Below, one piece after another: positions 2,479-62,962 of a stretch of DNA of 64,000 nt. Below the pieces are notes generated by a model. That model ran no database searches. It saw nothing but the letters and a program-made list of their open reading frames with translations, and was not told the origin of the DNA. The stretch is from positions 284,223-348,222 of the IMG/VR virus record IMGVR_UViG_3300023257_000007; one strand, given 5' to 3'. The position numbers and the translations under genes are program-made. Numbering within the stretch: the first letter of the stretch is position 1; each line of letters opens with the position of its first letter.

Positions 2479-2490
2479 AATTTTCTTTAT

Positions 2491-2850: not shown

Positions 2851-3179
2851 TGTTTTATTCTATCTAATTTTAATTTTCTTTGTTTTCTAATATATTCTTT
2901 ATTAAAACCTTCTTTTGAAATACAATTATATACCCACTCATCCAACTTCTCAATAACATTTTCATCAACATCTTGTCCCTGTACATCTAAATCTGTTAAT
3001 TCAATAATACTATCACCAATATTTTTTATTAATTGTGAATAGTTATAATGGAAATGAAATGTTATTCCTTTTTTCATAAACCACAAATGAACATAATTCG
3101 TAACTTCTGGATGATCATTTAATTCAACTTTTATACAATATTCTTCTGAATATTTTTTACTTAATTCATTTACATTCAT
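2847..3179 (-). CDS. hypothetical protein with basic RKxKL tail
   Basis: Ends RKQRKLKLDRIKQ. Confidence 0.75.
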   Translation of the reverse strand: MNVNELSKKYSEEYCIKVELNDHPEVTNYVHLWFMKKGITFHFHYNYSQLIKNIGDSIIELTDLDVQGQDVDENVIEKLDEWVYNCISKEGFNKEYIRKQRKLKLDRIKQ

Positions 3180-3994: not shown

Positions 3995-4020
3995 ATATTT
4001 TCTTTTAATATTTTTATCAT

Positions 4021-4710
4021 TTAATATTTCATTTCTTCTATTGCATATGATGGTATAAAATCATATGTGTAAAATGCATCAACACCTGGATATTTTGGAT
4101 CAGTATATAATCTGAGTTGGTTTAATTTTTTCACATTTATTTTCAATATTAACGGTTTAAACGTATAATCTAAATCAATTTTTTCTTCAATGAAATTATC
4201 AATATATTCTAAAGTATCAAAAAAATAAATCCTTTCTGGTTGATTTTCTAATGTATTTTTAGATTTTATAGTTAATCCACTTTTCAATATTTTGTCTTTA
4301 TGTTTTTGATCTGAAACATGATATAATACGGTTTTTATCCCTTTATCTTCAAAATCAAAATTCTTATTGATAATAATAGAAAGTTTATTATTATTAAAAT
4401 AATCTTTTATAGTTAGATTTCCTTTAATGAATTTGTTATCATCTCCTTTATATTTTGATATATAATAACCAGATATATTTAATAATGAATGTAAATCATC
4501 AAAAAATTCTTTTGTTTTAATATTTGTAAAATTTACAATAACACCATTATTGATTGATATATCATATAATATATGATATTTTTTAAACAAATTTTCAATT
4601 TTCTGTTTTAATTTATCATAAGTAAAAGAATATATTAAACCCTCTACTATTAAAGTGTTTGGTATACCTTTTATATGATCATAATTACGATACTCATTAT
4701 AAGTTTTCAT
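4021..4710 (-). CDS. ADP-ribosyltransferase-fold (Tpt1/KptA-like) protein with leader
   Basis: LYHVS...ILKSGL...ERIYF...YTDPKY; paralog of 4774 and 31125. Confidence 0.55.
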   Translation of the reverse strand: MKTYNEYRNYDHIKGIPNTLIVEGLIYSFTYDKLKQKIENLFKKYHILYDISINNGVIVNFTNIKTKEFFDDLHSLLNISGYYISKYKGDDNKFIKGNLTIKDYFNNNKLSIIINKNFDFEDKGIKTVLYHVSDQKHKDKILKSGLTIKSKNTLENQPERIYFFDTLEYIDNFIEEKIDLDYTFKPLILKINVKKLNQLRLYTDPKYPGVDAFYTYDFIPSYAIEEMKY

Positions 4711-20989: not shown

Positions 20990-22186
20990 TTAATTTGAAC
21001 CAATAGTTATTAATTCTGGATGAACAGCACACCCTCTATCCCATTTAAATTCTGGGACTACTTTTTTTAATATATTATATGATGCGTTTAAATCAGCATT
21101 TATTAATATGTTTTCTTTACTTTTAAACATACCCCTTGAAACCCTTTTACCACAATATTCTTTATGTTTTTTTAATTCTTCACCATCAATAAAAGAACAT
21201 TTACTTGTGAAACTTTCTTCATTTAATTTAACATTCAAACCTTCTTTTAATGCTTTATATTCAATCATTTGAATTAATTTATAAAAAGGTATTTGAACAA
21301 AATTTTGATTATTCTTCTTACCCATATTTACATTTTGTTTCCAACTTTTATTATAACCAATAATTATTGTATTTAAATCATTTTTTAAACAAAAATCAAC
21401 CAAATATTTAGATGCATTATGTAAGTAATTATTTATTTTATTATTTCTTTTTTCAGTTAATAAATATAACCTTTTACTTATAAAAGTTTTCTTTGGTAAT
21501 TTTGATTGTAATTTAGACAACTTTTTATTATAATATTGATTAATTGATTTTAATGGTCTACCGTTAATGATTATAGGTTTTACAACCTTTTCATTTGAAG
21601 TTATAGCCATTAAATTATTTACACCTAAATCAACACTACAATATTTACTATTGTCTAACTTTAAAGGTTTTTCATCATATTTATATACTATATTTATTTT
21701 ATATTTTTTTGTTTTAAGTGGTTTTACCTGAACCTCAATTATTTTTTTACTTTTATTTTGAAATGGTAATTTAATACCTGTTTTATATAATTCTATATAA
21801 CCTTCCTTTTCAAGATTTTTAGTTTTTACAGCATTATCCACCAAAATGGCTGTAAATTTACTATTTTTAGGTAAATATTTAGGTAAATTTGGTTTACCAG
21901 TAAATCTATTTGGATTCTTTTTCCATTCTTTCATAGCGTTAAAAAAACTTTTCCAATTTGCATTAAGTATTCTTAGTGTTGGTCTAGCAATTCTAGATAA
22001 TAAATCTTTATATTCTACGTGATCTTTCATAATGGTATACATATCATATACTGTAATATAATTACCATGATTAATAAATTCCTGTCTGATAATGTAGTTA
22101 GCTTTATTGTAAAGATTTTTGGTTTTAACACAAATATCGTTTAAATTATTGTTATTTTTAATTATATGTGATTCAATTAAATACAA
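20990..22186 (-). mobile_element. tnpB: TnpB RNA-guided endonuclease (IS200/IS605-type, no TnpA nearby)
   Basis: RuvC I SVDLGVNN, EESFTSKCS, RuvC III INADLNASYNI; N-terminal KNLYN.ANY..RQ. Confidence 0.9.
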
Positions 22187-36187: not shown

Positions 36188-39100
36188 CTAATTTTTAATT
36201 ATTTTTTTTGTAAATATGTTATCTCCTGAAGTTAATACAATCATATACATTGCAGGAGGCAATTTTGATAAATCTATTGATGATATTTCTGCATTTTGAT
36301 ACTCATATTCCATTATTATTTGTCCATAATGATTGAATAGTTCTACATTTATTTTGTCTGTTTTATCAAAGTTTTCAAGATATATATAAATAATATCTCT
36401 AAATGGGTTAGGATAAATCACAACAGATTGATTTGCCGTTGTTTGATTACAAGAAGCCTGAATAAAATTGTAAGTTTTCGAAGTTCCGTCATAATCAACT
36501 TGAGTGAGTCTGTAATAGTTAATCCCGTCTGAGAAATTTGGATCTTTGAAGATGTAGTTTAATAAATTATTAGAATTTCCATTACCATCAATTTTTCCAA
36601 TCTGATCAAAATCCTTTGCGTTTGACGATCTTTCGATAGTGAAATAATCGTTATTTATTTCGCTAGCAGTTGTCCACTGAATATCTATGTTTCCATTATT
36701 GCAATCGGCTTCAAATTTCACAAGATTAACAGGCAAAGGATTTTCGTTACTCTTTGATCCGAAAGTAATTATTTTATTTGACTTTGCTCCAAAAGTAACA
36801 GGAAAACGAGATCTTATAAAGCCTGCATCGTGTGTAAAGCTTGTCAATAGAGGATCACTGTTGAAATCAATATTTGCCCACATAGAACCATTCCAATAGG
36901 CTACAAGTAAATCACTGGCAACAAAATCACCTGAAATCCCATCGTCAAAACCATGAACACAGATGGCGTCGTCAACATGAGTATTGTCGAACCAATATAG
37001 AGTTACAGGCATATCTTGGTCAGAATTAACTACCCAATTTTCTCTATTGCTGACATGATGCAAATTAAGGTCCATATTTCCGCCATGTTCCCACCAATCT
37101 GGCATGTAGGTATTTGAGAAATTATACTGAGCAGTAACAGTAACAGTTGATGCTCCTGTTGGATGTATTCCTAATGCTCCTGCAATGGCATATTCTACAG
37201 ATCCGTTGCCATCAAAATCTTGGATGCTAACATCACCTGTTGGGAAAATAAATTCATTTATCCCAGTTTTAGTAATCATTCCATCAACAAAACTATTGTT
37301 TGAAGAAACATTTGCTGTTGCTGAATTTATAAATGTAAGTGAACCTCCACCAGAATAATAAACAATACCATGGGTAAATGTTGCAGTTCCTTCTATTGTC
37401 ATAGGTGAAGTTATTTCAATATCAGCATGATTACCAAACGAGTTATCAAATAATATATTATTAAAATTACCTACACCTGCATTAATAGTCTGTAATCCAC
37501 TACCGTTAAATGCAACTGTTCCATTTCCGGCATTAAATGTTCCAGAGTTATTCCAATCACCTGTTACTTCTAATGATGACAATCCGCCCAAAGTCAATCC
37601 TGTGCCGATATTCATATCTTCGCAATAAACTGTGGAACTTGCTGTAGTTACAGCATTTGTAGTTGCACAAGTTCCAGCGTCGTAAGATTGAATAAATACA
37701 TTGCTGGTTGCAGAAGGTAATAGAGTTGCAACAGAGTATAGTGTGCCGTTATAATATAACCAGTTTGTAACATCGTCCCAACTATTACCGTTTGCTCCAG
37801 TCCAAAAGTAGTCGCCAGTGCCAATACCACCAGGTGTAGGTGCTGTTGTAACTGTTACTACCCAGCTTCCACCTGCCACTTCGAAACCTGTGTTACAAGT
37901 TCCATCATGTGCCCAACGTCTATAAGTTGTAGTTACTGTTAATCCTCCAGGAGGGTTGTAACTTGCAGAAGTCGCACCAGAAATATCTACTCCGTTAGCT
38001 TGCCATTTATATGTGATAGTATTATCACCACCGCTTGCTACAGCAGTAGAGCTAATATTTGCAGGATCTGTTCCCTGACAGATTGTTTCGCCTGTAGATA
38101 GAATTGTTCCAGCTGTGAAATCTGGTCGAACTGTAACAGTCCATGTTCCTGTTGCAGTTTCACCAGAACAGTTGTTGTTACTGTTAACCGTCATGGTGAG
38201 GGTAACTGTGTTTCCGGCATCACCTGCTGCTGGAGTGTAAGTTGGTGTTAATGTTGTTGCTCCGGATGTGATTGAACCTGCACCGTCTTCTGTCCAAGCA
38301 ATCGTACCGTTAGAAGCACTTGCTCCACTGACTGTCGCAGTTTCATTAACACAAATGTCCTGCGATCCGCCAGCCGAAGCTGTTGGTAATGGATCAACAT
38401 TCACGGTGTATGTTGCTGTTGCTATTTGAGGTGTACAAGCATTATCACTTGTTACAGTCATTGTAAGAGTAATTGTTCCACTGGCATCACCAGCAGCTGG
38501 AGTGTAAGTTGGTGTTAATGTTGTTGCTCCCGATGTGATAGAACCTGCACCGTTTTCTGTCCAAGCAATCGTACCGTTAGAAGCACTTGCTCCACTGACT
38601 GTCGCAGTTTCATTAACACAAATGTCCTGCGATCCGCCAGCCGAAGCTGTTGGTAATGGATCGACATTCACGGCTACATTATCACTTACTCCGCAACCAC
38701 TGGCTGTGGCTGTCATGGTGTAAGTTGTTGTTGATGATGGAGTTGCTACTGGATTTAAAATATTTGGATTACTTAAACCAGTAGTAGGAGACCAAGAGCA
38801 GGTTGGTTGTGCTTGTACGTTATAATGAACGATTCCATTAAACGCTCTAGGTGAACATACACTTGAAAATTGACCACATAATCCAATACCAGCTGTTAAT
38901 GTTAAATAAGAATCTGAATATGTTGTGTTTGCTGTAAGGGTAGTATATTTAGCATTGAAGTTAACATATATACCATAAGTCTGATTTGCCGGTATTATAA
39001 GATTGGCAATATCAAGATAATATTGAGTGCTTGTAACACCATTAATAGAATATGTCCCTAAAAGAATCCAAGAACCACTTGTTGTTTCACTACCTACATA

Positions 39101-41023
39101 GCTTCCCGATTTATAATATACATTAACGGTTTGGGTAGCAGTACTACCAGGTAAAATTGTAAATGCATCAATTTCAATAGGATTTGCACCAGTTGTTAAA
39201 TCAAACATATTTCCTCCACCACATCCATTACCTGCTGCAAAAGTAGTTGTTAAACTACAACTAACAGTACTAAGATTAGCACTTCCACTCAATTGCGAAC
39301 TCGACCCATTACAAATTGTCACATCACTTCCGGCCGAAACTCCTGTTGGTAAAGGATTTACTGTAACTGCCACACTTGCAGCAGCACTCCATGCTCCATC
39401 GCCGGTTCGGTACGATCTAATGTAATACGTTCCTGATGTTGTTACATTATATGTTGAGCCACTGCTTGTCGTAGATGTTCCACTGGCAGAGGTTTGCCAA
39501 TACCATGTTTCTCCAGAAGGAGGTGTGCCGTTTGCGGTGATTGTTACACTGCCGCAACCTGGAGAGTTTGAAGTTGGTGTGTTTGGGGTAATAGGTAGAA
39601 TAACGGCAACGGCAACAATACAAGTATAATCTTCCGTTTCACCATAAGTAAGTGCAGCACATGGATCGGTAGGCGTAGTAGTTCCATAATAATCTGAACG
39701 TATACGCATTTTGTGTGAACCCAGTGTAGCACCAACCGGAATTGTAAAACTTGTGTTTACGGCCGTAGTATTAGAAGGATTAACATAAGTAAGAACCTTC
39801 TCACCTGCGGAAAATGTCAGATCATCATTAAAATCAATCCACACAACATGATCCATACCATAACTCTGAGTGGTGAGACTCAAATTAACAACACCTCCTT
39901 GTACCTGCGATACAGAATAGGTGCCACTATAATCGGTATAAGAGGTTGATGAACAACCTGAGGTACTATTAAAGTTGGTCAGCCCACCTGATGTGGTAAC
40001 ATTTGTTATCCACATATAATTGCAAGGATAAGAAGAAACAATCGGGCTGCAGGGTGGAGCTACAGCTTCTATAATCTCTATATCATCAATAGACATATCG
40101 CTTGTGTATGATGTAGATGTAAGCCCTCTAAAACGCAATTGAACACTACTGTTACCAGCATATGTGCTAAGATCTACATTCGCAGTATGCCATGAGTTAC
40201 CTTGGTCGCCACTTAGGCTCCATACGGTATTCCATGTACCACAATTGTCACCGGATGCTTCAAGATACAATGTTCCCATAACTGCACCGTACATATGGTA
40301 TTGAAAGCTCATATCTATTCCCCCCATAGACGAGAAATCGAGACATGGTCCATACATTGTTGCTGTTTTATTGGAATAATTTGGTGTAGATGATTCCGTG
40401 TACATGTAGTAGCTACCTTCTGCTGCTGCGCTTGGTCCGGTACCGCCTGAGCTAGTGCCTCCGGTTTGTCTTGTCCAATCGAAATCATCCCCGGGTCTAT
40501 TCTCCCAATATCCCATTCCTGTTTCAAATCCTTCTGAGTAAGGAAATGTGCTTACTATTGCAGGGCATGAGCAGGGTGGTGCTCCACCACTAGAAACAAA
40601 TGTAATCGTAGTGGTAACGCAACCAGTATTCGTTCCACAAGATGAATTTGTATTCCAATGTGCATAATATGTTCCTGAACTTGTCGCAGTCCATTGTAAA
40701 GGACTGGTTCCGTGAGCAACCACAGCTCCATTATATGAGCCAGATCTGATTGTAACATATCCTCCCGTACTAATTGCACAACTGTATGTAGTTCCTGAAA
40801 CTACACTATTTATTGTACTATACTCTGTTTGAAAACTACATGTGCTAAAAGTTTCACTTCCAGATGTAGGTGCAGTTGCACTTCCATAAGAAGAAGAATT
40901 TGTACATTGAGCTTGCACCTTGTTAATTGTAAATAACATGCTTATTGCCAATAAAAGCACATAAATCCCTTTGATATTCGATAACTTATTCAGCAATACT
41001 GAAAATGTATAATTTTCTTTCAT
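36188..41023 (-). CDS. T9SS cargo adhesin-like protein (MAM, GEVED, Ig-like repeats, type A CTD)
   Basis: Signal peptide; MAM (DFDW...GP..A.EG.YYMY.E...YHMYG); GETEDY; LPV.L..F.A..W.TASE.NND.F.IERS; IYPNPF...L....Y.I...TKKIIK; visibly higher GC than flanks. Confidence 0.9.
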   Translation of the reverse strand: MKENYTFSVLLNKLSNIKGIYVLLLAISMLFTINKVQAQCTNSSSYGSATAPTSGSETFSTCSFQTEYSTINSVVSGTTYSCAISTGGYVTIRSGSYNGAVVAHGTSPLQWTATSSGTYYAHWNTNSSCGTNTGCVTTTITFVSSGGAPPCSCPAIVSTFPYSEGFETGMGYWENRPGDDFDWTRQTGGTSSGGTGPSAAAEGSYYMYTESSTPNYSNKTATMYGPCLDFSSMGGIDMSFQYHMYGAVMGTLYLEASGDNCGTWNTVWSLSGDQGNSWHTANVDLSTYAGNSSVQLRFRGLTSTSYTSDMSIDDIEIIEAVAPPCSPIVSSYPCNYMWITNVTTSGGLTNFNSTSGCSSTSYTDYSGTYSVSQVQGGVVNLSLTTQSYGMDHVVWIDFNDDLTFSAGEKVLTYVNPSNTTAVNTSFTIPVGATLGSHKMRIRSDYYGTTTPTDPCAALTYGETEDYTCIVAVAVILPITPNTPTSNSPGCGSVTITANGTPPSGETWYWQTSASGTSTTSSGSTYNVTTSGTYYIRSYRTGDGAWSAAASVAVTVNPLPTGVSAGSDVTICNGSSSQLSGSANLSTVSCSLTTTFAAGNGCGGGNMFDLTTGANPIEIDAFTILPGSTATQTVNVYYKSGSYVGSETTSGSWILLGTYSINGVTSTQYYLDIANLIIPANQTYGIYVNFNAKYTTLTANTTYSDSYLTLTAGIGLCGQFSSVCSPRAFNGIVHYNVQAQPTCSWSPTTGLSNPNILNPVATPSSTTTYTMTATASGCGVSDNVAVNVDPLPTASAGGSQDICVNETATVSGASASNGTIAWTENGAGSITSGATTLTPTYTPAAGDASGTITLTMTVTSDNACTPQIATATYTVNVDPLPTASAGGSQDICVNETATVSGASASNGTIAWTEDGAGSITSGATTLTPTYTPAAGDAGNTVTLTMTVNSNNNCSGETATGTWTVTVRPDFTAGTILSTGETICQGTDPANISSTAVASGGDNTITYKWQANGVDISGATSASYNPPGGLTVTTTYRRWAHDGTCNTGFEVAGGSWVVTVTTAPTPGGIGTGDYFWTGANGNSWDDVTNWLYYNGTLYSVATLLPSATSNVFIQSYDAGTCATTNAVTTASSTVYCEDMNIGTGLTLGGLSSLEVTGDWNNSGTFNAGNGTVAFNGSGLQTINAGVGNFNNILFDNSFGNHADIEITSPMTIEGTATFTHGIVYYSGGGSLTFINSATANVSSNNSFVDGMITKTGINEFIFPTGDVSIQDFDGNGSVEYAIAGALGIHPTGASTVTVTAQYNFSNTYMPDWWEHGGNMDLNLHHVSNRENWVVNSDQDMPVTLYWFDNTHVDDAICVHGFDDGISGDFVASDLLVAYWNGSMWANIDFNSDPLLTSFTHDAGFIRSRFPVTFGAKSNKIITFGSKSNENPLPVNLVKFEADCNNGNIDIQWTTASEINNDYFTIERSSNAKDFDQIGKIDGNGNSNNLLNYIFKDPNFSDGINYYRLTQVDYDGTSKTYNFIQASCNQTTANQSVVIYPNPFRDIIYIYLENFDKTDKINVELFNHYGQIIMEYEYQNAEISSIDLSKLPPAMYMIVLTSGDNIFTKKIIKN
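38228..38674. repeat. near-identical internal direct repeat, 267-bp period
   Basis: DPLPTASAGGSQDICVNETATVSG...TPAAGDA occurs twice. Confidence 0.85.
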
Positions 41024-41292: not shown

Positions 41293-42369
41293 TTATATAT
41301 TAAACTCCAAATCCAATTTTTCTAAAATATTTTCATCGTATCTAATTCTTAATAAATCAATACCATTATCATTACAATATTTGGTTTTTATTAAATCATT
41401 CTCTTGCCTATATTTGAGTCCTTCATCGCCATTCCAATATTCAACAGACTTAAAATGTTGAGCACCATCATATTCAACACACATATTTAATAAAGGTAAA
41501 TAAAAATCAAATGGTAAAGGTTTTATATTCCTACAATCATCAAACCTTTTTTGAGATTCATATTCAATATTATTATCTTTTAAATATTTTTCAATCAATA
41601 ACTCCTTCTTACTTAACCTACATTTTGGACAACCATTACCTGTTAAATGTTCATAAGGAACTTGTTCAAAAATACCATGAGTAGAACATGTTATTTTAAC
41701 TTTTGTATTAGCATTTTTATAATCAACTAAAGAATAATTATACCTTAAATCATGTTTTTTATTAGCCTTTTCTATAAACTCTTCAGTCGTAAATCGTACA
41801 TTATTAGCACATTTAGGACAACCAGTTTTTTTATTAATATGGTTATCAGGTGTTTGTTCAAAAACTCCATGTTCTTCACAAATAATTTTAATCTTTGTTG
41901 TAGTATTCTTATATTCAACTAAAGAATAATCATATTTATCTCCATGTATATCAATGGCTTTTTCTATAAATTCTTCTGTCGTTAATTTTTTATTACCAGA
42001 ACAACTAGGACAACCTCTTCCAAATAAATGTGATTTTGGAATTTGTTCAAAAACACCATGTTCTTTACAAATAATTTTAACTTTTGTAATATTATTTTTA
42101 TAATCAACTAAAGAATAATCATATCTATTGCCATGTGTTTTAATAGATTTTTCTATGAAATCTGTAGACCTTTTAGAATCTATACCACATTTAATACAAT
42201 TTTTACCACTTAAATGACTACTTGGTTTTTGTTCAAAAACACCATGAACTTTACAAATAATTTTAATTTTTTTATTCGCACCAATATAATTAACTAAAGA
42301 ATAATCGTACCTATCTCCGTACAATTTCTTGGCTTTTTCTATAAATTTTTCTGTCGTTAATTTTCTCAT
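41293..42369 (-). CDS. homing-type endonuclease: four Zn-binding repeats plus PD-(D/E)XK/Vsr-like domain
   Basis: Repeated YDYSLV.Y...KIIC..HG.FEQ.P..H..G..C..C; FDFYLP...VEYDG.QHF. Confidence 0.85.
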   Translation of the reverse strand: MRKLTTEKFIEKAKKLYGDRYDYSLVNYIGANKKIKIICKVHGVFEQKPSSHLSGKNCIKCGIDSKRSTDFIEKSIKTHGNRYDYSLVDYKNNITKVKIICKEHGVFEQIPKSHLFGRGCPSCSGNKKLTTEEFIEKAIDIHGDKYDYSLVEYKNTTTKIKIICEEHGVFEQTPDNHINKKTGCPKCANNVRFTTEEFIEKANKKHDLRYNYSLVDYKNANTKVKITCSTHGIFEQVPYEHLTGNGCPKCRLSKKELLIEKYLKDNNIEYESQKRFDDCRNIKPLPFDFYLPLLNMCVEYDGAQHFKSVEYWNGDEGLKYRQENDLIKTKYCNDNGIDLLRIRYDENILEKLDLEFNI

Positions 42370-42380
42370 ATATCTTATAT

Positions 42381-42410
42381 AAAAAATCCCACCTAAAAGA
42401 TGGGATTTTT
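42381..42410. terminator. intrinsic terminator hairpin
   Basis: aaaaatccca...tgggattttt. Confidence 0.65.
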
Positions 42411-42428
42411 ATTAATTTTATTCTAAGA

Positions 42429-43865
42429 TTACATCTTATCAATCAATATACGCTTTCCAAATGTTAAATTACTAGGATCATCATTATGGGAAACAATCCA
42501 AATTACTCTATTGCTGAAAGTACTGTAGCGTCTTCTGTCAGGACAATCCCCAAGAGCATCTGTAAAATATATCATAAATGCTGGTTGCAGTCCCTTCTTT
42601 ACCAAGTTATCCTGAATCCAGTCAAACGGGGGAGTAAATCTTGTTCCACCGAAACCTTGAGGTCTTAATTTATCAATTTTAAATTTATTTCTTGTACTAA
42701 ATTCTTGTACACCACAAATATCATAATCACACCATATAACATGACATTTTTTAATACCTCTATTCTTAAAAATAGCATGTATTTCAGATGCAAACTTATC
42801 TAAATCATCTTCACTAATAGATCCAGATGTATCAATAGCAATAACAACGTTATTGTAATCTGATTTTTTCTTATTTAATCCCCATAAATAATCACCTCTA
42901 CTAATAGCACGTCTCTGTGGTAGTTTATGTTTTAATTTACTATAAATATTAGCAACAAATTTTCTTAATTCTGCTTGCCAATTTACTTTAGGTTTTGAGA
43001 TTTTTCTTAAAAATCTCTGCATATTAGCACTACCGAAACCTTGATTCTTAGATGAAGCATCTCTTACGATTTCACCCCATACTTGTTTCATTTTTTCATC
43101 ATTTCCTTTAGCGCCTTGTAATTCTTTGTTTCCTGATTGTCCAGCAGTTCCACCACCTTGTCCAGGTTTTCCTTTTCCTTTTCCTTTTCCTTGTCCGTTT
43201 CCTTCGCCTTCGCCTTCTCCTTCACATTCTCCTTCACATTCTCCATCATCATAAATATCAATACCACCACTTAATGAACCAGGGGCTTGAATATCAGAAC
43301 CAAGACCATCCATAAGTTGTTTAATAAGTTCTTTCTTTTTTTGTTTGTTTTTTTCCCATTCTGGTTCTAATTCAGCATAAATTTGTTCAGTACTCCAATC
43401 TTTATATTTTTCTTCATAAAGAACTTTCTCTGGCATTTTACCAATACCTTCTAATAATAGGTTAATAGCATAATCACCTGAAATATTCCATAATTCAGGA
43501 TCTCTGCCTAAACCTCTATCAAAATGGAATAATGCATTATGCATAATTTCATGACATAGAACAAATACACATTCTTCTTCACTTAATTCATTAGCAAAGT
43601 CACTATTATACATGATTGATAAACCATCAGTTGCCATAGTTGTAATTCTAGGGTCTGTGGCTTGTTTAATTTTAAGATTAAATAATAAATCAGCAAAGAA
43701 ACCGTAGTTTGCTACGATAACCATAATACATTTTCTTATCTTTTTCCAAGCTCTATCATCTAATTTTTTCTTCTTATCATCTGATTTTTTTTGCTTATCT
43801 TCTTCTTTATCTTCTTTTCCTTCAACAATAGAAGCAAATTTGCAATATCGTTCTAATTTTCCCAT
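42429..43865 (-). CDS. metallopeptidase-like plus VWA domain protein (DUF2201-like)
   Basis: TMATDG, HEIMH, D.AIN, Gly-rich linker, MIDAS DTSGS, GGT.F, FTD. Confidence 0.88.
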   Translation of the reverse strand: MGKLERYCKFASIVEGKEDKEEDKQKKSDDKKKKLDDRAWKKIRKCIMVIVANYGFFADLLFNLKIKQATDPRITTMATDGLSIMYNSDFANELSEEECVFVLCHEIMHNALFHFDRGLGRDPELWNISGDYAINLLLEGIGKMPEKVLYEEKYKDWSTEQIYAELEPEWEKNKQKKKELIKQLMDGLGSDIQAPGSLSGGIDIYDDGECEGECEGEGEGEGNGQGKGKGKGKPGQGGGTAGQSGNKELQGAKGNDEKMKQVWGEIVRDASSKNQGFGSANMQRFLRKISKPKVNWQAELRKFVANIYSKLKHKLPQRRAISRGDYLWGLNKKKSDYNNVVIAIDTSGSISEDDLDKFASEIHAIFKNRGIKKCHVIWCDYDICGVQEFSTRNKFKIDKLRPQGFGGTRFTPPFDWIQDNLVKKGLQPAFMIYFTDALGDCPDRRRYSTFSNRVIWIVSHNDDPSNLTFGKRILIDKM

Positions 43866-44291: not shown

Positions 44292-45806
44292 TTATGGATT
44301 TAAAATGTCAGCAAATTTGTTATACCATTTCTTAATTGAAGGTACCCAAATTTTCTTCCAAGGATCATCAGTTGTTACATAAGCATGTGTCTTTTTAACA
44401 TATTGTAGTAACGATGTTGCAACTTCCATATTCTCAATTCTTCTTGCATATGTAATTAAATTTTCAAGTTCCTTTGCAGTTAATTTCTCACCTTTTTTAG
44501 CCATACCAATAGCAGCAGTTACCGCTCTAGATCTATCGATTCTTTTTGGTGGCATAGGAGCTTCTTCTGGTTTCTTGTATACAAGAGCAATATCTTTTGG
44601 TGGAAATACTGCCAATAAATCAAGATATTCTGCAAACTGAACAGCTGCAGTATTACCAACATGAGAATTAAATAACTTTTTAATTGCTTCTTTAGATAAC
44701 TGATTTCCTGATGCTTCTTTAGCTTCTGTATATTCTAATGATGCACTTGCCCAAGAACGTGGAGATGGCCAGTTAGGAGTTTCTTTATCAGGATCTAAAT
44801 GATGAAGTATGTCTTTATTGAAATCAATATAACCAATTACGTCAGGATCCATATAATCTTGTTTAATAGCCCATGTCACCCATTCATCTTTTGTTGTAAT
44901 AAGATTATAGTGAGTAAAACGGTTAGCTAGAGCAGTACCTAAATCAGTTACTGTTGGTTCTTCTTCACGTCTATTACCAGCAGCAATAATTAACCATTTA
45001 TCAGGTAATTTATATTCACCAACTTGACCATCAAGACATAGTTGAAGTGAAGCTGATAATACATGCTCATTAGCACGGTTCAATTCATCAAAAAACATAA
45101 TACCACCTTTTCCATTTTCACCATTATCACTAGGGAAAATCTTAGGTAATCTAAATGTCGTTCTTCTTGAAGTGTCTCCTTCAACTTTTACACCAGCAGC
45201 ATCTTTAGTATCTCTACCTTTAACAACTTCAATTTCTGGAAGGCCAATAAAATCAGTAGGCTCAATTGTTGCTAAATGCCATACTAAACAATCAACTTGA
45301 AGTTCTTTGGCTGTTGCATTAATAACATCTGTTTTACCAATACCTGGAGCACCCCAAATAAATGTAGAAAACATTTTATTTGGATATTTTGTCTTCATTT
45401 TAAACTTACGAACAAGAATATTACTCATTTCTGAAGGAACATAATTACCTACTTCTGGATTAGGATGCTCTAAAGGCACCTTATCCTCGTTCATAGCTAA
45501 TTTTGCATCTTCAATTGATAATTCTTCTGTTTCTTCTTCTTCAGAAAGATTATCAATTTCTTTTTCTATTCCTGATATTTTACTTTCATCTGGTTTACTA
45601 CCATATGGAAAAATATCTACTTTACCTTCTAATGCGCCTTTCTTCTTCAAGAAGAGAGCATAATATAACCAAGCAGCTTTTTTAAATTTCTTTTCAAAGA
45701 AATCCCATACTTTGTCGACCATACCACTTATCCAATTTTCGTTAAGTTCGCTATCGTACATGTGCTTTTCGTTTAAAAAGTTCTTGTAATTTACTAATTT
45801 TTTCAT
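44292..45806 (-). CDS. MoxR/dynein-related AAA+ ATPase with leader
   Basis: GAPGIGKT, FFDELNRA, AAGNR, ALANRF, PSPRSW; starts MKKLVNYKNFLNE. Confidence 0.9.
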   Translation of the reverse strand: MKKLVNYKNFLNEKHMYDSELNENWISGMVDKVWDFFEKKFKKAAWLYYALFLKKKGALEGKVDIFPYGSKPDESKISGIEKEIDNLSEEEETEELSIEDAKLAMNEDKVPLEHPNPEVGNYVPSEMSNILVRKFKMKTKYPNKMFSTFIWGAPGIGKTDVINATAKELQVDCLVWHLATIEPTDFIGLPEIEVVKGRDTKDAAGVKVEGDTSRRTTFRLPKIFPSDNGENGKGGIMFFDELNRANEHVLSASLQLCLDGQVGEYKLPDKWLIIAAGNRREEEPTVTDLGTALANRFTHYNLITTKDEWVTWAIKQDYMDPDVIGYIDFNKDILHHLDPDKETPNWPSPRSWASASLEYTEAKEASGNQLSKEAIKKLFNSHVGNTAAVQFAEYLDLLAVFPPKDIALVYKKPEEAPMPPKRIDRSRAVTAAIGMAKKGEKLTAKELENLITYARRIENMEVATSLLQYVKKTHAYVTTDDPWKKIWVPSIKKWYNKFADILNP

Positions 45807-56425: not shown

Positions 56426-57145
56426 ATGAAAATTAGAAACGGATTTGTAAGTAACAGTTCTTCTAGTAGTTTTATTATACATGGTGTAAAAATTACAAAC
56501 AAAGAAGACATTGAAAAATTAACTAAATTATCTTGGCCTGAACAAAGTGAACTTGGTCTTGAATTAGAAGAAGATAGATATTTCTTTGGTGGTAATGATA
56601 AAGATAACGATTATATAGTTGGTTTAAATGGTGGTAATCTTGAAGATGGTGTCATCGCTGAAATTAAACCATTAACTGAATCAAATAAAGAAAAATTGGT
56701 TAAAATATTAAAAACATTAGATATTAAGATAAATATTGATAATATTAAAACATATGCTCAATATATAAGCAATGATAATTATTAAACAATAAATTATAAA
56801 AATATGAAAATAAGAAACGGATTTGTAAGCAACTCAAGTAGCAGTAGCTTCATGATTGAAAATAAAACAGATAAAGATTTAACATTAGTGGATTTTATAA
56901 CTGAACAACCTAATTTAATACAAGAATATGTAGATGAATATGATAGAGATGATCCTGAATACACTCAAGAAAATCTTTTAATCTCAGCAAAATTAAATAA
57001 TGTTACATTTAAAGCAAAGACAGAAGAAGCTTATACTTTTGGTGATGATGATGGAACATTAATTGGTAAGATACTTGATTATATGTTAAGAGATAATTGG
57101 GAAACAGAAAGTTTCAAGTGGAAATTTCATAGTTCAAATAGATAA
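56426..57145 (+). other. tandem pair of MKIRNGFVSNSSSSSF-family proteins (56426-56785, 56804-57145)
   Basis: Identical first 16 aa with synonymous differences; divergent bodies. Confidence 0.85.
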
Positions 57146-57147
57146 AT

Positions 57148-57462
57148 ATGTTAATATTTGATGATTATAATGATTTTGTCAAAGGAGTTAAAAAACATTT
57201 TCCTAATGCAAAAGATTATCCAAACGCAAAAGATATTTGTAAATATAGTTACATAATCTTACATCTAAATACAGATGAAAAAATGATGAAAATTGTTGAA
57301 AAACATGCCAAAAATAAAGAAATTAATGAATATTTACCAGTGTATTGTTTATATAATGAAACTAAAAAATGTGAAGAATATTGTTGGTTAAACAATAAAT
57401 GTAAAAAATCTATAAATAGATTCGAAAGAAAAAGAAAAATAAAAAGAATAAAATATGAATAA
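57148..57462 (+). CDS. hypothetical protein with RK tail
   Basis: Ends RKRKIKRIKYE. Confidence 0.7.
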   Translation: MLIFDDYNDFVKGVKKHFPNAKDYPNAKDICKYSYIILHLNTDEKMMKIVEKHAKNKEINEYLPVYCLYNETKKCEEYCWLNNKCKKSINRFERKRKIKRIKYE

Positions 57463-57817
57463 AAAAGTATATATTGCATCACCATACACAAAAGGTAATC
57501 AACTAGAAAATGTAAATGTTCAAATGGATATGTATTATGAATTAGTACAATTAGGATTTCTACCATTTACACCATTATACTCACACTACGTACATGAAAG
57601 AAATCCAATATCTTATGATAAATGGATGGAAATTGATTATAAATGGATTGACGTATGTGATTATATTTTAAGATTGCCTGGTGAAAGTAAAGGTGCAGAT
57701 TTAGAAATTGAATATGCTAAGAACCAAAACAAAATAGTATTTTATAGCGTTGAAGAATTAACAAATTATATTGAACCTAAACATTTAGATGAAGGTGACA
57801 TACATATAAGTTGTTAA
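57455..57817 (+). CDS. nucleoside 2-deoxyribosyltransferase-like (DUF1937/DUF4406-type) protein
   Basis: KVYIASPYT...PFTP...W...D...CD...ESKGA..E. Confidence 0.7.
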   Translation: MNKKVYIASPYTKGNQLENVNVQMDMYYELVQLGFLPFTPLYSHYVHERNPISYDKWMEIDYKWIDVCDYILRLPGESKGADLEIEYAKNQNKIVFYSVEELTNYIEPKHLDEGDIHISC

Positions 57818-57833
57818 AAAATAAAAAAAGATA

Positions 57834-58376
57834 ATGATTAGAGGATTTGAAATTGTTTCTGATGAACACAGAAAACATGAAAATGTACAACTACCATTAA
57901 GGGGTAGTGAAGATTCAGCTGGATATGATTTTTATTCAAATGAAACACATATAATAGAACCAGGTGATCAAAAAGTTTTTTGGACTGATATCAAAGCTTA
58001 CATGCAAAAAGGTGAAGTTCTTAAAATATATGTTAGAAGTTCGATTGGTATTAAAAAAGGACTTAGATTAGCAAATCAAACTGGGGTAATTGATTGTGTT
58101 CCAAAAGGAACTAAAATTAAAATTAAAGATGGTGAAATAAATGTTGAAGATTTATTGGACAAAAAAAAAATTATTATATCTTATAATGAAGAAGAAGATG
58201 AAATAGAAGAAGATGAATTAAAAGAAATATGGATCGTAGATGATCTGGAATTATTAGAAATTGAGACAGAAGAAGGTGACTCAATTAAAATACCCTTTGA
58301 AAAAGAGGTATATACTGAAAGAGGATGGATTAAAGCAAAAAATCTAACTCTTGATGATAAAATATTAACATATTAA
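57834..58376 (+). CDS. dut: dUTPase N-terminal part (87 aa) fused to split intein N-fragment (93 aa)
   Basis: AGYD, RSS, GVID followed by intein block A CVPKGTKI (Cys1 at 58095) and TERGW.KA..L...D.I. Confidence 0.92.
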   Translation: MIRGFEIVSDEHRKHENVQLPLRGSEDSAGYDFYSNETHIIEPGDQKVFWTDIKAYMQKGEVLKIYVRSSIGIKKGLRLANQTGVIDCVPKGTKIKIKDGEINVEDLLDKKKIIISYNEEEDEIEEDELKEIWIVDDLELLEIETEEGDSIKIPFEKEVYTERGWIKAKNLTLDDKILTY

Positions 58377-58640
58377 ATGGAAAACAAAAAATTAAATAAT
58401 CTAACAAATGCAGCTAATGATTATAATAAAGGTTTAAACGATTGTGCAATAGTCGATATTAATTCAAATTTAGATTTAATTGAAAAAATTGAATTAGATA
58501 AAAGTATTAAAGAATCTTTAATACATGCACACAAAAGATTAATAGACATTTTAAATGGTGAAATAGACTTGAATGAAGAAGATTATTTGATCTATATTTC
58601 ATATATACAAGAAATAATTGCAGATTATAGATTAAATTAA
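58377..58640 (+). CDS. hypothetical helical protein inside the fractured dut locus
   Basis: 87-aa ORF starting directly after the IntN stop. Confidence 0.7.
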   Translation: MENKKLNNLTNAANDYNKGLNDCAIVDINSNLDLIEKIELDKSIKESLIHAHKRLIDILNGEIDLNEEDYLIYISYIQEIIADYRLN

Positions 58641-58701
58641 AAAATTAACATAATTCCAGTATTAATGTTTAATATATATTATTAAATAAATAATTTTAAC
58701 G

Positions 58702-59748
58702 ATGGAAATATTATGTAAAAATTGTGGTAAATCTTTTAAAGTTGCCAACTGGCAAATTAAAAAAGGAACAAAATATTGTTCTCATGAGTGTTATTGGGAA
58801 GATAAAAGAGGCGGTAAGAAAAAAGAAGAAAAGGTATGTATAGAATGTGGTGAGAAATTCTTACAAGAAACTTGGGAAAGTAAAAGAAAATTTTGTTCTC
58901 ATGAATGTTACTGGAAAAATAAAAAAAAACTAAAAGATATTGATTGTTTGAATTGTGGTAAAACATTTGAGCCATATAATTTAAAAACAAAATTTTGTTC
59001 TAAAAAATGTTCAGGTGAATATATAAGAAAACAAAACAATAAAATCTGTATTCAATGTGGAAAAGAATATCATCCATTAATTAAAACTTCTCAATATTGT
59101 AGTAGAGAATGTTATTGGAATTATAGAAGAGAAAACAAAGGTGTAATAATACAAACGAATCAAGGTGATTTTAGAACAAAATTAATATGTAATAATTGTG
59201 GAAAAGAATATTTAGAACATAAATATAGATTAAAAGTTTCTAAGTTTTGCTCAATGAAATGTCATTTTGAATCTAAGAGATTAAAGAAAAAATGTCCAAC
59301 ATGTGAAAAATATTTTGAAGTTCCAAATCACTTAGCACATCGAATTTTTTGTAGTAAAGATTGTGTAGATTTTACAAATAAATCTAAAAAAGAAAATGAC
59401 TTTTATAAATTTGTTAACAACATAATAAATGTAGAACAAAATAAAAAGGTTATATATGACAAAGTTTATTTTCCAGATTTAATGAATGAAGAAAACAAAA
59501 TAATAATTGAATTTTTTGGCGATTATTGGCATTGCAATCCTAATTTCTATGAAGATGAATATTATAATTCAAAAACAAGAAAACATGCACACGAAATGTG
59601 GAGCGATGATCAATTAAGATTAGAAAAATTAGAAGGATTAGGATATGATGTTAATATTATTTGGGAAAATGAATGGGAAACTGATTTAGAATTAGTTAAA
59701 ACAAAAATATTAAAAATAAAAGATAAATATGAAATACGTAAAAATTAA
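58702..59748 (+). CDS. free-standing homing endonuclease (CxxC...[F/Y]CSxxC repeats plus Vsr-like domain)
   Basis: About six Zn-finger repeats; PDL...IIEFFGDYWH...D..R...LGY....WE. Confidence 0.85.
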   Translation: MEILCKNCGKSFKVANWQIKKGTKYCSHECYWEDKRGGKKKEEKVCIECGEKFLQETWESKRKFCSHECYWKNKKKLKDIDCLNCGKTFEPYNLKTKFCSKKCSGEYIRKQNNKICIQCGKEYHPLIKTSQYCSRECYWNYRRENKGVIIQTNQGDFRTKLICNNCGKEYLEHKYRLKVSKFCSMKCHFESKRLKKKCPTCEKYFEVPNHLAHRIFCSKDCVDFTNKSKKENDFYKFVNNIINVEQNKKVIYDKVYFPDLMNEENKIIIEFFGDYWHCNPNFYEDEYYNSKTRKHAHEMWSDDQLRLEKLEGLGYDVNIIWENEWETDLELVKTKILKIKDKYEIRKN

Positions 59749-60028
59749 AAGAATAGAAAAATGTGAATCAGAACCGATTTATCATTTAACAATTAAAAAT
59801 AATCACAATTTTTTTGGTAATAATTTATTGTTACACAACTGCGATTATTTTGGAAATTCCAAAAATGACGGAAATATTGGTGCTTGTTTATGGAACCCAA
59901 CAAACGAACCAATTACTATTAAAAAAGGTGAAAGAATAGTTCAAGGTATATTTGAATTGTTCTTAGAATCTGATAACTGTAACACCAAAAAAGAAAGAGA
60001 CGGTGGAATCGGTTCAACAAATAAATAA
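59729..60028 (+). CDS. dut: split intein C-fragment (37 aa) fused to dUTPase C-terminal part (62 aa)
   Basis: ...HNFFGNNLLLHN|CDY, then KGERIVQGIF and R.GG.GST (dUTPase motifs 4 and 5). Confidence 0.92.
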   Translation: MKYVKIKRIEKCESEPIYHLTIKNNHNFFGNNLLLHNCDYFGNSKNDGNIGACLWNPTNEPITIKKGERIVQGIFELFLESDNCNTKKERDGGIGSTNK

Positions 60029-60034
60029 CAAAAT

Positions 60035-60733
60035 ATGAAAAACGGAAGTATTTTAGGAAAACTCTTTCCTACACAAAATGATTTAATGAATCATCTATCT
60101 GAATATGGAATGTTAACAGATAAACAAATAATTGAGCGATCATCCCAAGGTGGTGGATTAAATACAGAAGAAGCGTTAATGCTTACTTTGGAAAGAGATT
60201 TCTGCAAAGATGTTATTGATAATATAATCAATAAAAAATAAATAACAAAATATGAAAACAGAACAAATAATTACAGAATTGAGTAAAGCATCAGAAAATG
60301 AAGACTACAAACGAGGCTGGATTGCGAATATAGCAATGTCTCAATTAGATAATGAACGTTGGTATAGAGAAAAACATAATAAAGTTGGTAAATATTTAAA
60401 TAGTAAAGACAAACATGCTATTGCAAACTTAGGTGCAGAATATTTTATTGAATTACTTACAAAAAAATAATAATTATGAAACTAAAAAAATTTATTGAAA
60501 AGTTTGTTGAACCTAATACATTAATTAGGTTACAATACAAAATAAAAGGTGGACACGAAGAAGTAGGTAATCTAGGAATGGAATGGGAGTTAAAGGATGG
60601 ACTGTTTGCTAACCATAGAGTTGTAGGTATAACAGACATACTTGTACGTGGTAATTACACAGAAGCAGTTAATTTGGTTATTAAAAGAAAAAACAAAATA
60701 AATAATTATGTATATATTTTCATACGGGAGTAA
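60035..60733 (+). other. three small hypothetical genes (60035, 60252, 60476)
   Basis: Co-oriented ORFs. Confidence 0.65.
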
Positions 60734-61363: not shown

Positions 61364-61759
61364 ATGAAAAAACAAGAAATTCCACTTCAGTTGAAGATAC
61401 AAGTACCAAAACCTGAAGGTTTAAACAAAAAACAATTAAAAAAACAATTACAAGAACTACAATTTGAATATGATTCTCTTTTTGATAAATTTTACACTAA
61501 AATAGAGATTATATTCACATATTCAAAAGATAATTATTGCCATTTTGAAAAATTAGAGATTGATGAAAATATATTTGCATTTTTAATAAATGTTAAAGAT
61601 ATAACTAGACAACAAGCAGAACAACGATGTTGGGAAGTAATGAAGAATTATGAAAAATATGATGATTGTTTAATAATTTGGTTGCCATCTGTTATAGAAG
61701 AAGACAAAATTGTAAAACTTACAAACACCACAAAAAATATAGAACTATGTCATGATTAA
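61364..61759 (+). CDS. hypothetical protein
   Basis: 131-aa ORF overlapping the next gene. Confidence 0.7.
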   Translation: MKKQEIPLQLKIQVPKPEGLNKKQLKKQLQELQFEYDSLFDKFYTKIEIIFTYSKDNYCHFEKLEIDENIFAFLINVKDITRQQAEQRCWEVMKNYEKYDDCLIIWLPSVIEEDKIVKLTNTTKNIELCHD

Positions 61760-62651
61760 GAAAATAAAAGCAGTGACTAAAGATTATGTAAAAGAACATA
61801 AAGATCTTTATGATAAAGGTTTACCTAATAAATATATGGAATTATTCCATCAAAAAATTGAAGGTGTTAGAAAGGCAAAAATTGTGTATGGTTTTAGTCA
61901 AGCTGAAATGATTGAATATAGTAAATGTCAAAATGATATAATATATTTTATTGAAAAATATTGTTCAATATTAACACCTGATGGTATTGTTAAACCTAGA
62001 TTATATGATTATCAAAAAACAATGTTAGAAAATTATACAAATAACAGATTTAGCTTAAATATGATAAGTAGACAGATGGGTATTTCAAATATCATTGCAT
62101 GGTTTACTTTACATATGTTAACTTTCAATGAAAGCAAAAATGCAATATTCATGGATATAAAATCAGGGTACTGTAAAAGTTTATTAGAAAAAGTTAAAAC
62201 ATCATATAAAATGTTACCTTTCTTTCTTCAAAAAGGTGTCATAACATGGAACCAAAGATCTATAGTTTTAGAAGATTATAGTCGTATTACTACACAATCC
62301 TATTCTAAAGAACCGGTGATTAGCTCTGATATTCACTTATTATATATGGATAATTACTCTAGAACTACAACATCAGAAACATCATACAAATATTTATTAC
62401 CAACAATCACATCTACAAATGATTCTAGAATAATAATATCAGGTAAACCTAAAGGTTTTAACCACTTTATTAAACTACTTCATAATAGTGAATTACCTTC
62501 AAACCATCCAGACAAAAATATATTTGAATCTTTAAGAGTATATTGGTGGCAACATCCAAATAAAAATGAAGAATGGAAGAAACAGGAAATAGAAAATATT
62601 GGTCAACAAATGTTTGATCAAGAGTATGATTTAAAATTTACAAATAAATAG
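61752..62651 (+). CDS. T4 gp17-like terminase ATPase-domain paralog, catalytically degenerate, no nuclease domain
   Basis: KC..D..YFIE.YC, LYDYQ, SRQMGIS, LLYMDN, W.QHP...W, F.QEY...F. Confidence 0.75.
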   Translation: MIKKIKAVTKDYVKEHKDLYDKGLPNKYMELFHQKIEGVRKAKIVYGFSQAEMIEYSKCQNDIIYFIEKYCSILTPDGIVKPRLYDYQKTMLENYTNNRFSLNMISRQMGISNIIAWFTLHMLTFNESKNAIFMDIKSGYCKSLLEKVKTSYKMLPFFLQKGVITWNQRSIVLEDYSRITTQSYSKEPVISSDIHLLYMDNYSRTTTSETSYKYLLPTITSTNDSRIIISGKPKGFNHFIKLLHNSELPSNHPDKNIFESLRVYWWQHPNKNEEWKKQEIENIGQQMFDQEYDLKFTNK

Positions 62652-62678: not shown

Positions 62679-62962
62679 ATGAACTACACATTAGCTAAAG
62701 ACTAATGTGTTTCAGGTTTCATAGACTCATCTAATGACAACGCCTCCACCTGTTTTTGTTTAATGTCCGACTCAATCCCTGAACCAGACAATATTTTTAA
62801 TCCTTGTTTTAATATGTTTTTAGCTGCATTAAAATCTCTATCATGATTGGTTTCACATGATGGACAAGTCCATTCTCTATCTTTTAATGTTAAATTTTGG
62901 TTTATCCAACCACAATTAGAACACATTTTACTTGATGGAAAAAATCTATCAATTTTTACATA
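62679..62962 (-). mobile_element. tnpB: IS200/IS605 remnant: TnpB C-terminal fragment plus intact right end
   Basis: [17 protein letters not shown]...WTCPSC...[11 protein letters not shown]; hairpin acacattag/ctaatgtgt (62686-62710) ending GTAGTTCAT. Confidence 0.8.

Follow-up and report, generated by a model that had tools for sequence, protein, structure and literature searches.

A phage dUTPase gene probably fractured by a naturally split intein and a free-standing Vsr-like endonuclease

The fractured dUTPase locus

We analysed the final 64 kb of the 348,222-bp viral contig IMGVR_UViG_3300023257_000007 of IMG/VR; this whole stretch is called the window, and positions refer to it unless stated otherwise. 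The dUTPase gene (dut) is present there in two pieces. Four open reading frames (ORFs) lie in a row on one strand: the first encodes the N-terminal part of dUTPase (N-extein) followed by an N-terminal intein fragment (IntN), the second is an 87-aa ORF (ORF87), the third encodes a putative endonuclease, and the fourth encodes a C-terminal intein fragment (IntC) followed by the rest of dUTPase (C-extein) (Table 1). We consider it quite probable that the dUTPase gene is fractured by a naturally split intein together with a free-standing Vsr-like homing endonuclease, with splicing and homing predicted from sequence. A preliminary description of this DNA had proposed the four-gene order. It described dUTPase motif 3 as broken at GVID/CDY (the slash marks the break), an acidic 93-aa IntN as the end of the first gene, a basic 37-aa IntC as ending in His-Asn followed by Cys+1, and a complete dUTPase of 149 aa and about 17 kDa as the product of joining. 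It also described a Zn-finger/Vsr-like endonuclease that has its own sequence motif and overlaps the IntC start, and an 87-aa orphan as an unusual second passenger. ORF calls place all of these elements at the positions given in Table 1, and the analyses below agree with each of these points.

Table 1. Positions of genes, protein regions and sequence motifs of the fractured dUTPase locus
Feature	Position	Strand	Description
Gene 1	57834..58376	+	ORF, 180 aa: dUTPase N-extein and IntN
dUTPase N-extein	57834..58094	+	87 aa; motifs 1, 2 and first half of 3; ends in GVID (catalytic Asp at -1)
Asp(-1)	58092-58094	+	Codon GAT
IntN	58095..58376	+	93 aa and TAA stop; Cys1 at start
Cys1	58095-58097	+	Codon TGT
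Pro67	58293-58295	+	Block B
Lys70	58302-58304	+	Block B
ATTAACATA, left copy	58364..58372	+	9-nt direct repeat over last IntN codons
ORF87	58377..58640	+	ORF, 87 aa
ATTAACATA, right copy	58644..58652	+	Just past ORF87, 280 nt from left copy
TTAATATATA	58669..58678	+	Promoter-like motif, 24 nt before endonuclease ATG
Endonuclease gene	58702..59748	+	ORF, 348 aa
Endonuclease N-terminal region	58702..59373	+	Six CxxC...CSxxC Zn-ribbon modules (regular-expression count), presumably DNA binding
Endonuclease C-terminal domain	59374..59748	+	Vsr-like (EDxHD) nuclease domain; E270 (59509-11), D274 (59521-23), H277 (59530-32), D303
Gene 4	59729..60028	+	ORF, 99 aa: IntC and dUTPase C-extein
IntC	59729..59839	+	37 aa; block F IYH(19)LTIKNNHNFF, block G LLLHN; first 20 nt within endonuclease ORF
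His-Asn	59834-59839	+	Codons CAC AAC
Cys+1	59840-59842	+	Codon TGC
dUTPase C-extein	59840..60028	+	62 aa and stop; Cys+1, rest of motif 3 (CDYFGN), motifs 4 and 5

The layout is reproduced in other assemblies. An identical N-half was found on at least 11 contigs from independent assemblies (ENA, JGI and Logan), and the gene order is the same wherever it is shown. Contigs of run X4 span 58007-59014 and 59620-60497, covering both gene junctions, with zero differences. A ~97% variant is present in the marine run X5, in which a contig runs from the IntN end through ORF87 into the beginning of the endonuclease gene. The preliminary description had named a mis-assembled contiguous intein gene as another way to read the locus; the 11 or more contigs and the bridging in X4 uphold the fractured layout instead.

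Both pieces of the host gene are recognizable as dUTPase. The N-half matches the Pfam dUTPase family (PF00692) at positions 2-78 of 129 with 34.6 bits and the C-half at positions 69-128 of 129 with 26.4 bits, against a cut-off of 22. PHROGs also assigned both halves to one dUTPase family, phrog_135. All five motifs of trimeric dUTPases are present (SAGYDF, VRSS, GVID/CDYFGN, RIVQGIF and GGIGSTN), and the junction reads GVID/CVPKGT... on the N side and ...LLLHN/CDYFGN on the C side. The exteins abut on the intact dUTPases P0022, P0023, P0024 and P0036 (150-153 aa) with no residue lost or doubled. Identity to intact dUTPases is 82% for the N-extein (the match being P0022) and 73% for the C-extein. 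The column of Cys+1 is variable in the intact enzymes, in which it is M, S, R or Q, and +1 is the sole residue changed. The solved structure closest to P0022 is dUTPase 3h6x (2e-29). The spliced product is predicted to have 149 aa and 16.8 kDa.

The peptides that flank the break have the characters of intein halves. IntN is acidic (net charge -14, pI 4.3) and IntC is basic (+3, pI 9.4). A profile of 34 IntN sequences matched the solved inteins Ssp DnaB (1mi8, 2.6e-6), NrdJ-1 (8ubs, 3.5e-6) and DnaX (6.5e-5). IntC matches Pfam Intein_splicing at positions 120-155 of 155 (E 3e-6), and it also matches the PDB intein chains gp41-1, DnaX, DnaB and NrdJ-1. IntN and IntC are separated between blocks B and F; published split inteins break at the same place, which is the usual insertion site of the endonuclease domain (PMC2677866). 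Features of class-1 inteins are present, namely the Cys1 nucleophile, a terminal His-Asn followed by Cys+1, HINT homology and colinear exteins. C1, V2, P3, T6, P67, K70, G77 and W78 are invariant in the 34 IntN sequences (alignment A2). In the 43 sequences of IntC and C-extein (alignment A1), which go down to 41% identity, the invariant residues are N25, N27, F28, N31, H36, N37, C38 (the +1 Cys) and Y40. Furthermore, all nucleotide differences of the X5 variant in IntN (10/10) are synonymous, and 4 of 7 differences in the upstream gene change the protein. The invariance of these residues and the synonymous-only changes in IntN show that purifying selection acts on the intein, specifically on the splicing residues.

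The endonuclease consists of two regions. The Cys residues of the N-terminal Zn ribbons are invariant in alignment A3, and weak Pfam matches were to Zn_ribbon, YacG and treble-clef families. A NUMOD/HTH (helix-turn-helix) region was not found at the N-terminus, and the Zn-ribbon modules stand in its place. In the C-terminal domain, the EDxHD residues E270, D274, H277 and D303 are all present. E270, G273, Y275-W-H-C-N-P280, D303, W321 and E322 are invariant in A3, which holds five homologues, and D274 is Asn in one of them, L001. The L001 endonuclease (2304-3320 of that locus), which belongs to the closest relative, reads FGNYWH at this place and may be inactive. A PDB search with the whole endonuclease as a single sequence gave Zn-finger and RING matches only, which were judged spurious. 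Hidden Markov model matches to Vsr, DUF559 and MTES_1575 were weak, and a five-sequence profile reached Vsr at E ~0.09. Because these searches gave spurious or weak matches, fold comparison was needed for the link to Vsr. The AF2 model has a mean pLDDT of 82 (>90 in the C-terminal domain) and shows repeated hairpin-helix modules. Its top PDB matches in Foldseek were Vsr 1cw0 (probability 1.00), I-Bth0305I 3r3p (0.99, TM 0.67) and 1vsr (0.98), with E-values of no better than 0.02-0.05. The predicted fold thus places the enzyme, as a putative member, in the Vsr-like EDxHD homing-endonuclease family. The gene has its own start and a reading frame that differs from that of IntN, and the first 20 nt of the IntC gene (59729-59748) lie within the endonuclease ORF.

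The motif TTAATATATA, one copy of which precedes the endonuclease gene, was counted in the window. It occurs 15 times compared with 3.8 +/- 2.0 expected, and 0 of 100 shuffles reached 15. The copies, which include those at 732, 11130, 22216, 29912, 45844, 48377 and 58669, are mostly located on the coding strand, 20-45 nt ahead of an ORF start, and are often preceded by a T-run. Because TTAATATATA is over-represented before ORF starts, the endonuclease gene can be said to have a promoter-like element typical of this phage. From its distribution, TTAATATATA is probably a promoter element specific to the phage. Similar TATA-rich elements were observed at the same place in related loci. A sigma-70 scan of 57400-60400 found 23 sites compared with 25.4 in shuffled sequence, and no terminator was found between the genes. 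The IntC start inside the endonuclease ORF suggests co-transcription and possibly coupled translation.

ORF87 directly follows the IntN stop (TAAATG) in the same frame, and its product is acidic (pI 4.5). A word-indexed search of 5.8 billion proteins found identical copies only. ORF87 had no Pfam or PHROG match and no useful lead in ESM Atlas, and tblastn against the fetched loci showed that it is absent from all ~25 distinct related loci. It is also present in the X5 variant, and the chance of an 87-codon open frame at the local base composition is ~8e-4. In 34/34 relatives, the end of IntN stays within two alignment columns of one position. Therefore, the IntN stop is ancestral and ORF87 is not a remnant of read-through. 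The direct repeat ATTAACATA has five copies on the + strand of the window, two of which bracket ORF87. This suggests a secondary insertion of ~280 nt that brought in ORF87 behind the IntN stop, ahead of the endonuclease promoter region. Most likely, ORF87 is a passenger specific to this lineage that neither splicing nor homing would need. It is rather unlikely, in our judgement, that ORF87 is a functional partner in the cassette, such as a regulator of the endonuclease, an immunity factor or an anti-defence gene that pays for upkeep. The tight coupling to the IntN stop and the improbable length of the frame argue for such a role, as does its position within a stretch of the X5 variant without listed differences, where it may travel with the endonuclease. 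However, the other family members all do without ORF87, the searches above gave no homologue, domain or structural lead, and the 9-nt repeat around it fits a simple secondary insertion.

The runs that hold the locus are labelled as salt-lake metagenomes, and the G+C content of the window is 24%. It encodes phage functions, among them a helicase, an HNH-like endonuclease and the ATPase domain of a terminase, as well as TnpB-type transposases. The source of the locus is an AT-rich jumbo phage from a salt-lake metagenome. None of the deposited phage genomes resembles the window in nucleotide-level comparison, and megablast of its last 24.5 kb against deposited phages gave nothing. In the whole window, Rfam matched neither a group I or group II intron nor any other RNA family, and no tRNAs were found there either. 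The gene just upstream of the dUTPase N-half (57455-57817, +) matches DUF4406/DUF7768 and the PHROG nucleoside 2-deoxyribosyltransferase; because of this match, the split dut gene lies in a nucleotide-metabolism cluster. Two small adjacent ORFs (56426-56785 and 56804-57145, +) have identical first 16 residues (MKIRNGFVSNSSSSSF), diverge after them and match no Pfam family. They look like tandem paralogues in their sequences.

The terminase large-subunit ORF (61752-62651, +) contains the N-terminal ATPase domain only (Terminase_6N, positions 3-201 of 215). After it, on the opposite strand (62702-62926, -), lies a C-terminal fragment of a TnpB/Cas12f-like protein, and the contig ends 1.1 kb beyond. 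Possible reasons are an interruption of the terminase gene or a contig break at a repeated insertion sequence (IS) element. A full-length IS605-type OrfB/TnpB gene with OrfB_IS605 and TNB domains is located at 20990-22186 (-), and TTAATATATA lies ~30 nt upstream of its start. A 1611-aa ORF (36188-41023, -) carries MAM, GEVED and a type IX secretion C-terminal sorting domain (Por_Secre_tail), and the G+C content of its region is 35-42% compared with ~24% elsewhere. This ORF looks host-acquired and hints at a Bacteroidota host. Beside it, at 41293-43865 (-) and 44292-45806 (-), are genes for a treble-clef/HNH-like endonuclease (PHROG 559 and 681), a DUF2201 metallopeptidase/VWA-like protein and an ATPase.

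Related loci and spread of the element

A word-indexed protein search revealed ~35 full-cover N-halves of 166-250 aa with the junction G[VIT]ID/CVPxGT and ~40 C-halves of 98-108 aa. An exhaustive search with the IntN profile gave 2504 matches, and among the best 150 of them several dozen proteins of ~175-240 aa end in IntN. More than 80 metagenomic N-halves and more than 40 C-halves have a common junction. Thus, the split dUTPase intein arrangement is a large, unannotated metagenomic family and is not rare in sequence data. The IntN part had no covering match in any of 50,697 deposited phage records. In a set of one genome per prokaryotic species, the sole full-length match was a 9-kb contig binned in a metagenome-assembled genome of Candidatus Muiribacterium halophilum.

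The layout of the window recurs in the loci L001, L004, L010 and L013 and in at least 10 IMG/VR lineages: the N-half is followed by a single endonuclease gene (277-359 aa), the 3' end of which overlaps the start of the C-half. The endonucleases of related loci show 34-47% identity and keep the Cys pairs of the Zn ribbons and the E..GDYWHCNP..D motif. Identity to the IntN of the window is 47-62% where the N-exteins are only 23-33% identical. Because the similarity of IntN outlasts that of the exteins, the element has moved among distant dut genes. The X5 variant has 10 differences in IntN (58241-58343) and more in the flanking genes, and none is listed for 58344-59360 in the covered stretches, with 4 of the 14 differences in the X5 contig 58209-58756 left unplaced by the table. 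This mosaic fits a recently shared cassette that includes ORF87, for which the low-depth contigs are only suggestive. Contig joints were considered as possible intein-less alleles and were set aside, since their flanks were shorter than 30 nt.

Besides the layout of the window, other states of the element are found at the same site. P0223 (284 aa) and P0239 (293 aa) are contiguous mini-inteins in a single ORF. L035/L036 (3821-4001), which belong to the intein family of the window, have a 179-nt gap between the halves with a Vsr-like remnant (profile positions 57-118). In these loci, the endonuclease has decayed and the split intein persists. A second family of split inteins at the dUTPase site has an IntN that starts with CFS or CFT, a block B of TPGT and the block F Asp. 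In L019, L024-L029 and L041 (about 3090-4040) of this family, Pfam identified a TnsA-like PD-(D/E)xK endonuclease with a Zn finger. The endonuclease is decayed in L042 and is absent, leaving a 107-nt gap, in L038-L040 and L045-L047. In the published model, an endonuclease invades an intein, fractures the host gene and later decays while the split persists (PMC2677866). Judged from these sequences, all states of this model are visible for one host gene, dUTPase.

Catalytic centre, proposed mechanism and alternatives

Block B of the window intein is PxxK and not the canonical Thr-x-x-His. In alignment to Ssp DnaB (KATANHRFLT) and NrdJ-1, Pro67 falls on the block B Thr and Lys70 falls on the block B His. 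Among 85 dUTPase-hosted IntN-like sequences, the residue at the His position is Lys in 72 (68 PxxK and 4 A/SxxK), Q, T, E or S in 12, and His in 1. Of the IntN-like sequences from other hosts, ~114 of 125 have the canonical T/S/GxxH. In all distinct loci with both halves (15/15), PxxK is accompanied by a His in block F (IYH19L), where Asp is the usual residue. The second dUTPase intein family lacks the block B His but retains Asp in block F (8/8 loci), and other hosts mostly have His and Asp. Since the loci are related, these counts are not independent events. The pairing of PxxK in block B with a His in block F is a new feature, which had been missed in the preliminary description. One solved intein (6y75/6tmm) has a block F His alongside a canonical His in block B, which weakens a strict "His swap" in which the block F residue would take over from the block B residue. 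Splicing via a compensatory mechanism is known for natural inteins that lack the block B His (PMC6333167). We infer that inteins of the dUTPase clade activate the N-terminal scissile bond through a compensatory arrangement. One hypothesis is that the centre is adapted to the catalytic Asp of the host at -1, which is common to all dUTPase-site inteins. It is possible, although we hold it to be doubtful, that the dUTPase-site inteins are a distinct mechanistic class. In this class, the centre would be re-wired around Asp(-1) without the block B His. In the family of the window, Lys and the block F His would form an alternative charge relay for efficient splicing. At this locus, ORF87 would in addition be nested in the cassette and move with the endonuclease, which would make the locus a selfish element of three layers: an intein, a homing endonuclease and the hitch-hiker ORF87.

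The split-intein reading predicts the following course. Two polypeptides would be made, dUT(1-87)-IntN with the acidic 93-aa fragment and IntC-dUT with the basic 37-aa fragment and 62 aa of dUTPase. IntN and IntC would pair electrostatically and fold into a single HINT domain. Class-1 trans-splicing would then proceed through an N-S acyl shift at Asp(-1)/Cys1, trans-thioesterification to Cys+1, cyclisation of Asn37 and an S-N shift. The outcome would be the 149-aa, 16.8-kDa dUTPase with its motif 3, GVID-CDYFGN, restored, which would form the usual trimer. The homing endonuclease would cut intein-less dut alleles of co-infecting phages, and repair would copy the cassette, which would comprise the 3' part of IntN, ORF87, the endonuclease gene and the 5' part of IntC. 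The endonuclease 3' end would thereby supply the start of the IntC gene.

Several observations weigh against this reading. The normally essential block B His is absent, and impaired splicing is possible. The Pfam score of IntC, 27.5 bits, is below the curated cut-off of 35.8, and the matches of the endonuclease to Vsr and I-Bth0305I are weak by E-value (0.02-0.09). Folding of the RNA upstream of the endonuclease, compared with shuffles, gave no significant hairpin (z -0.73), unlike at many published loci. The read-level evidence consists of low-depth assembler contigs and not of raw reads. Finally, the gene status of ORF87 is drawn from the ORF length, the stop-start coupling and its presence in the variant, with no homologue found.

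One alternative is that the intein halves lost splicing together with the block B His and are now a module by which the dUTPase pieces dock non-covalently; we regard it as improbable. The change of block B from TxxH to PxxK in the family would fit it, and for a fragmented phage ribonucleotide reductase (NrdA), assembly via interaction domains of mobile-element origin is reported (PMC3045599). However, the 34 diverged IntN sequences all keep Cys1 and the 43 IntC sequences all keep His-Asn and Cys+1, residues that a docking module would not need. Lys70 and Pro67 are invariant too, which points to a selected compensatory centre, and natural inteins without the block B His do splice (PMC6333167). 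In addition, the active site would probably be obstructed if a HINT domain of 130 aa stayed in place immediately behind the catalytic Asp of motif 3. Even less probable, in our view, is a dUTPase gene that is decaying as a pseudogene after insertion of the endonuclease, with half-ORFs that are functionless relics. Decay of endonuclease genes is indeed seen in some relatives (L035/36 and L042), and a second, intact dut gene could lie elsewhere in the 348-kb genome, of which 64 kb was covered. Against this, both half-ORFs are intact in all ~25 distinct loci and among the more than 80 N-halves and more than 40 C-halves, the dUTPase motifs are conserved, and IntN of the X5 variant has 10 synonymous and 0 non-synonymous changes. 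Split forms also outlive the loss of the endonuclease, and because they persist, the halves are maintained by selection. An assembly artefact, a mis-called contiguous intein or a group I intron carrying the endonuclease can hardly be credited, even though the sequence is metagenomic and phage endonuclease genes often reside in group I introns: the layout is repeated in at least 11 ENA, JGI and Logan contigs and bridged by X4 contigs without differences, the IntN stop is kept in position in 34 relatives, the endonuclease is in another frame with its own start, Rfam found no intron in the window, and the flanking peptides bear intein signatures.

Comparison with known systems

Dassa et al. 2009 described fractured genes for gp41 helicase, IMPDH, DnaE, NrdA, NrdJ, ligase and terminase, and dUTPase is not included (PMC2677866). 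The statement of the preliminary description that such genes are known for other phage enzymes agrees with this list. Its inference that dUTPase is a novel host holds within the literature searched. No report of a dUTPase intein was found in these full texts, coverage of which is incomplete, so that a report in a subscription journal is possible. The locus is not isolated: a large metagenomic family occupies the same site. dUTPase is a new host gene, with a new family of intein alleles, for a known fractured-gene arrangement. A small and well-understood enzyme of nucleotide hygiene thereby joins the short list of genes fractured by inteins and endonucleases, with the insertion right after the catalytic Asp of motif 3. 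The dozens of natural variants (contiguous, with two types of endonuclease, with a decayed one or with none) are a test set for endonuclease invasion and fixation of the split, and the invariant Lys for His in block B, together with a His in block F, amounts to a natural experiment on how inteins catalyse splicing. The compact pair of 93 and 37 aa, which would tolerate Asp at -1, could be an orthogonal trans-splicing tool if it is fast, and the tandem Zn-ribbon array fused to an EDxHD nuclease may interest nuclease engineers.

The published fractured loci gp41-1, gp41-8, IMPDH-1, NrdJ-1, NrdA-2, DnaE, ligase and terminase have an overlap of 6-69 bp between endonuclease and IntC, the IntC start lies inside the endonuclease ORF in 15 published loci, and a hairpin or late-promoter element precedes the endonuclease ORF in many, not all, of them (PMC2677866). 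As in these loci, the dUTPase gene is split at a conserved active-site motif, and the IntN and IntC genes follow one another in the same orientation. The halves are separated by a Vsr-like endonuclease gene whose 3' end runs into the IntC start (20 nt here), the break is at the usual endonuclease-insertion site, and IntN is negative and IntC positive. An endonuclease-free variant exists in the dUTPase family, as it does for gp41-7. Unlike in these loci, the host is dUTPase, block B is PxxK and not TxxH, an extra 87-aa ORF precedes the endonuclease gene, no significant hairpin is found before it, and the endonuclease has Zn ribbons and not NUMOD motifs.

The EDxHD family was first predicted from fractured genes (PMC2677866) and was later characterised (PMC3239194). 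I-Bth0305I resides in a group I intron within recA, and its DNA binding relies on NUMOD/HTH motifs (PMC3239194). The window endonuclease is similar to I-Bth0305I (3R3P) in its predicted Vsr-like nuclease fold, in the E..D.xH..D residues and in the order of an N-terminal DNA-binding region and a C-terminal nuclease. Unlike I-Bth0305I, it is a free-standing protein encoded inside a split intein and carries six Zn-ribbon modules in tandem; the two sequences are ~20% identical. With regard to the catalytic centre, the dUTPase intein resembles the orthologues of the Tko CDC21-1 intein, which also lack the block B His and keep the other splicing residues, and in which a different residue compensates for the missing His (PMC6333167). 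In contrast to these contiguous archaeal inteins, it is split and comes from a phage, an invariant Lys stands in for the block B His, and block F has His where Asp is usual.

Ssp and Npu DnaE are cyanobacterial class-1 split inteins that use Cys1 and Cys+1; their IntN (~100 aa) is acidic and their IntC (~36 aa) is basic. The dUTPase intein shares with them the natural split, the class-1 features with Cys1 and Cys+1, the acidic IntN and the basic IntC. The DnaE halves differ in that they are encoded far apart with no endonuclease between them, have a TxxH block B and belong to a cellular host. The nearest published case is the intein of cyanophage vB_AphaS-CL131, whose host is a phage enzyme of the same dUTPase/dCTP-deaminase superfamily. 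This intein of dCTP deaminase is encoded in one ORF with a nested endonuclease domain (aa 133-483) and is reported to excise in E. coli (PMC6293099). Unlike it, the dUTPase intein is split, and its host enzyme is a different member of the superfamily.

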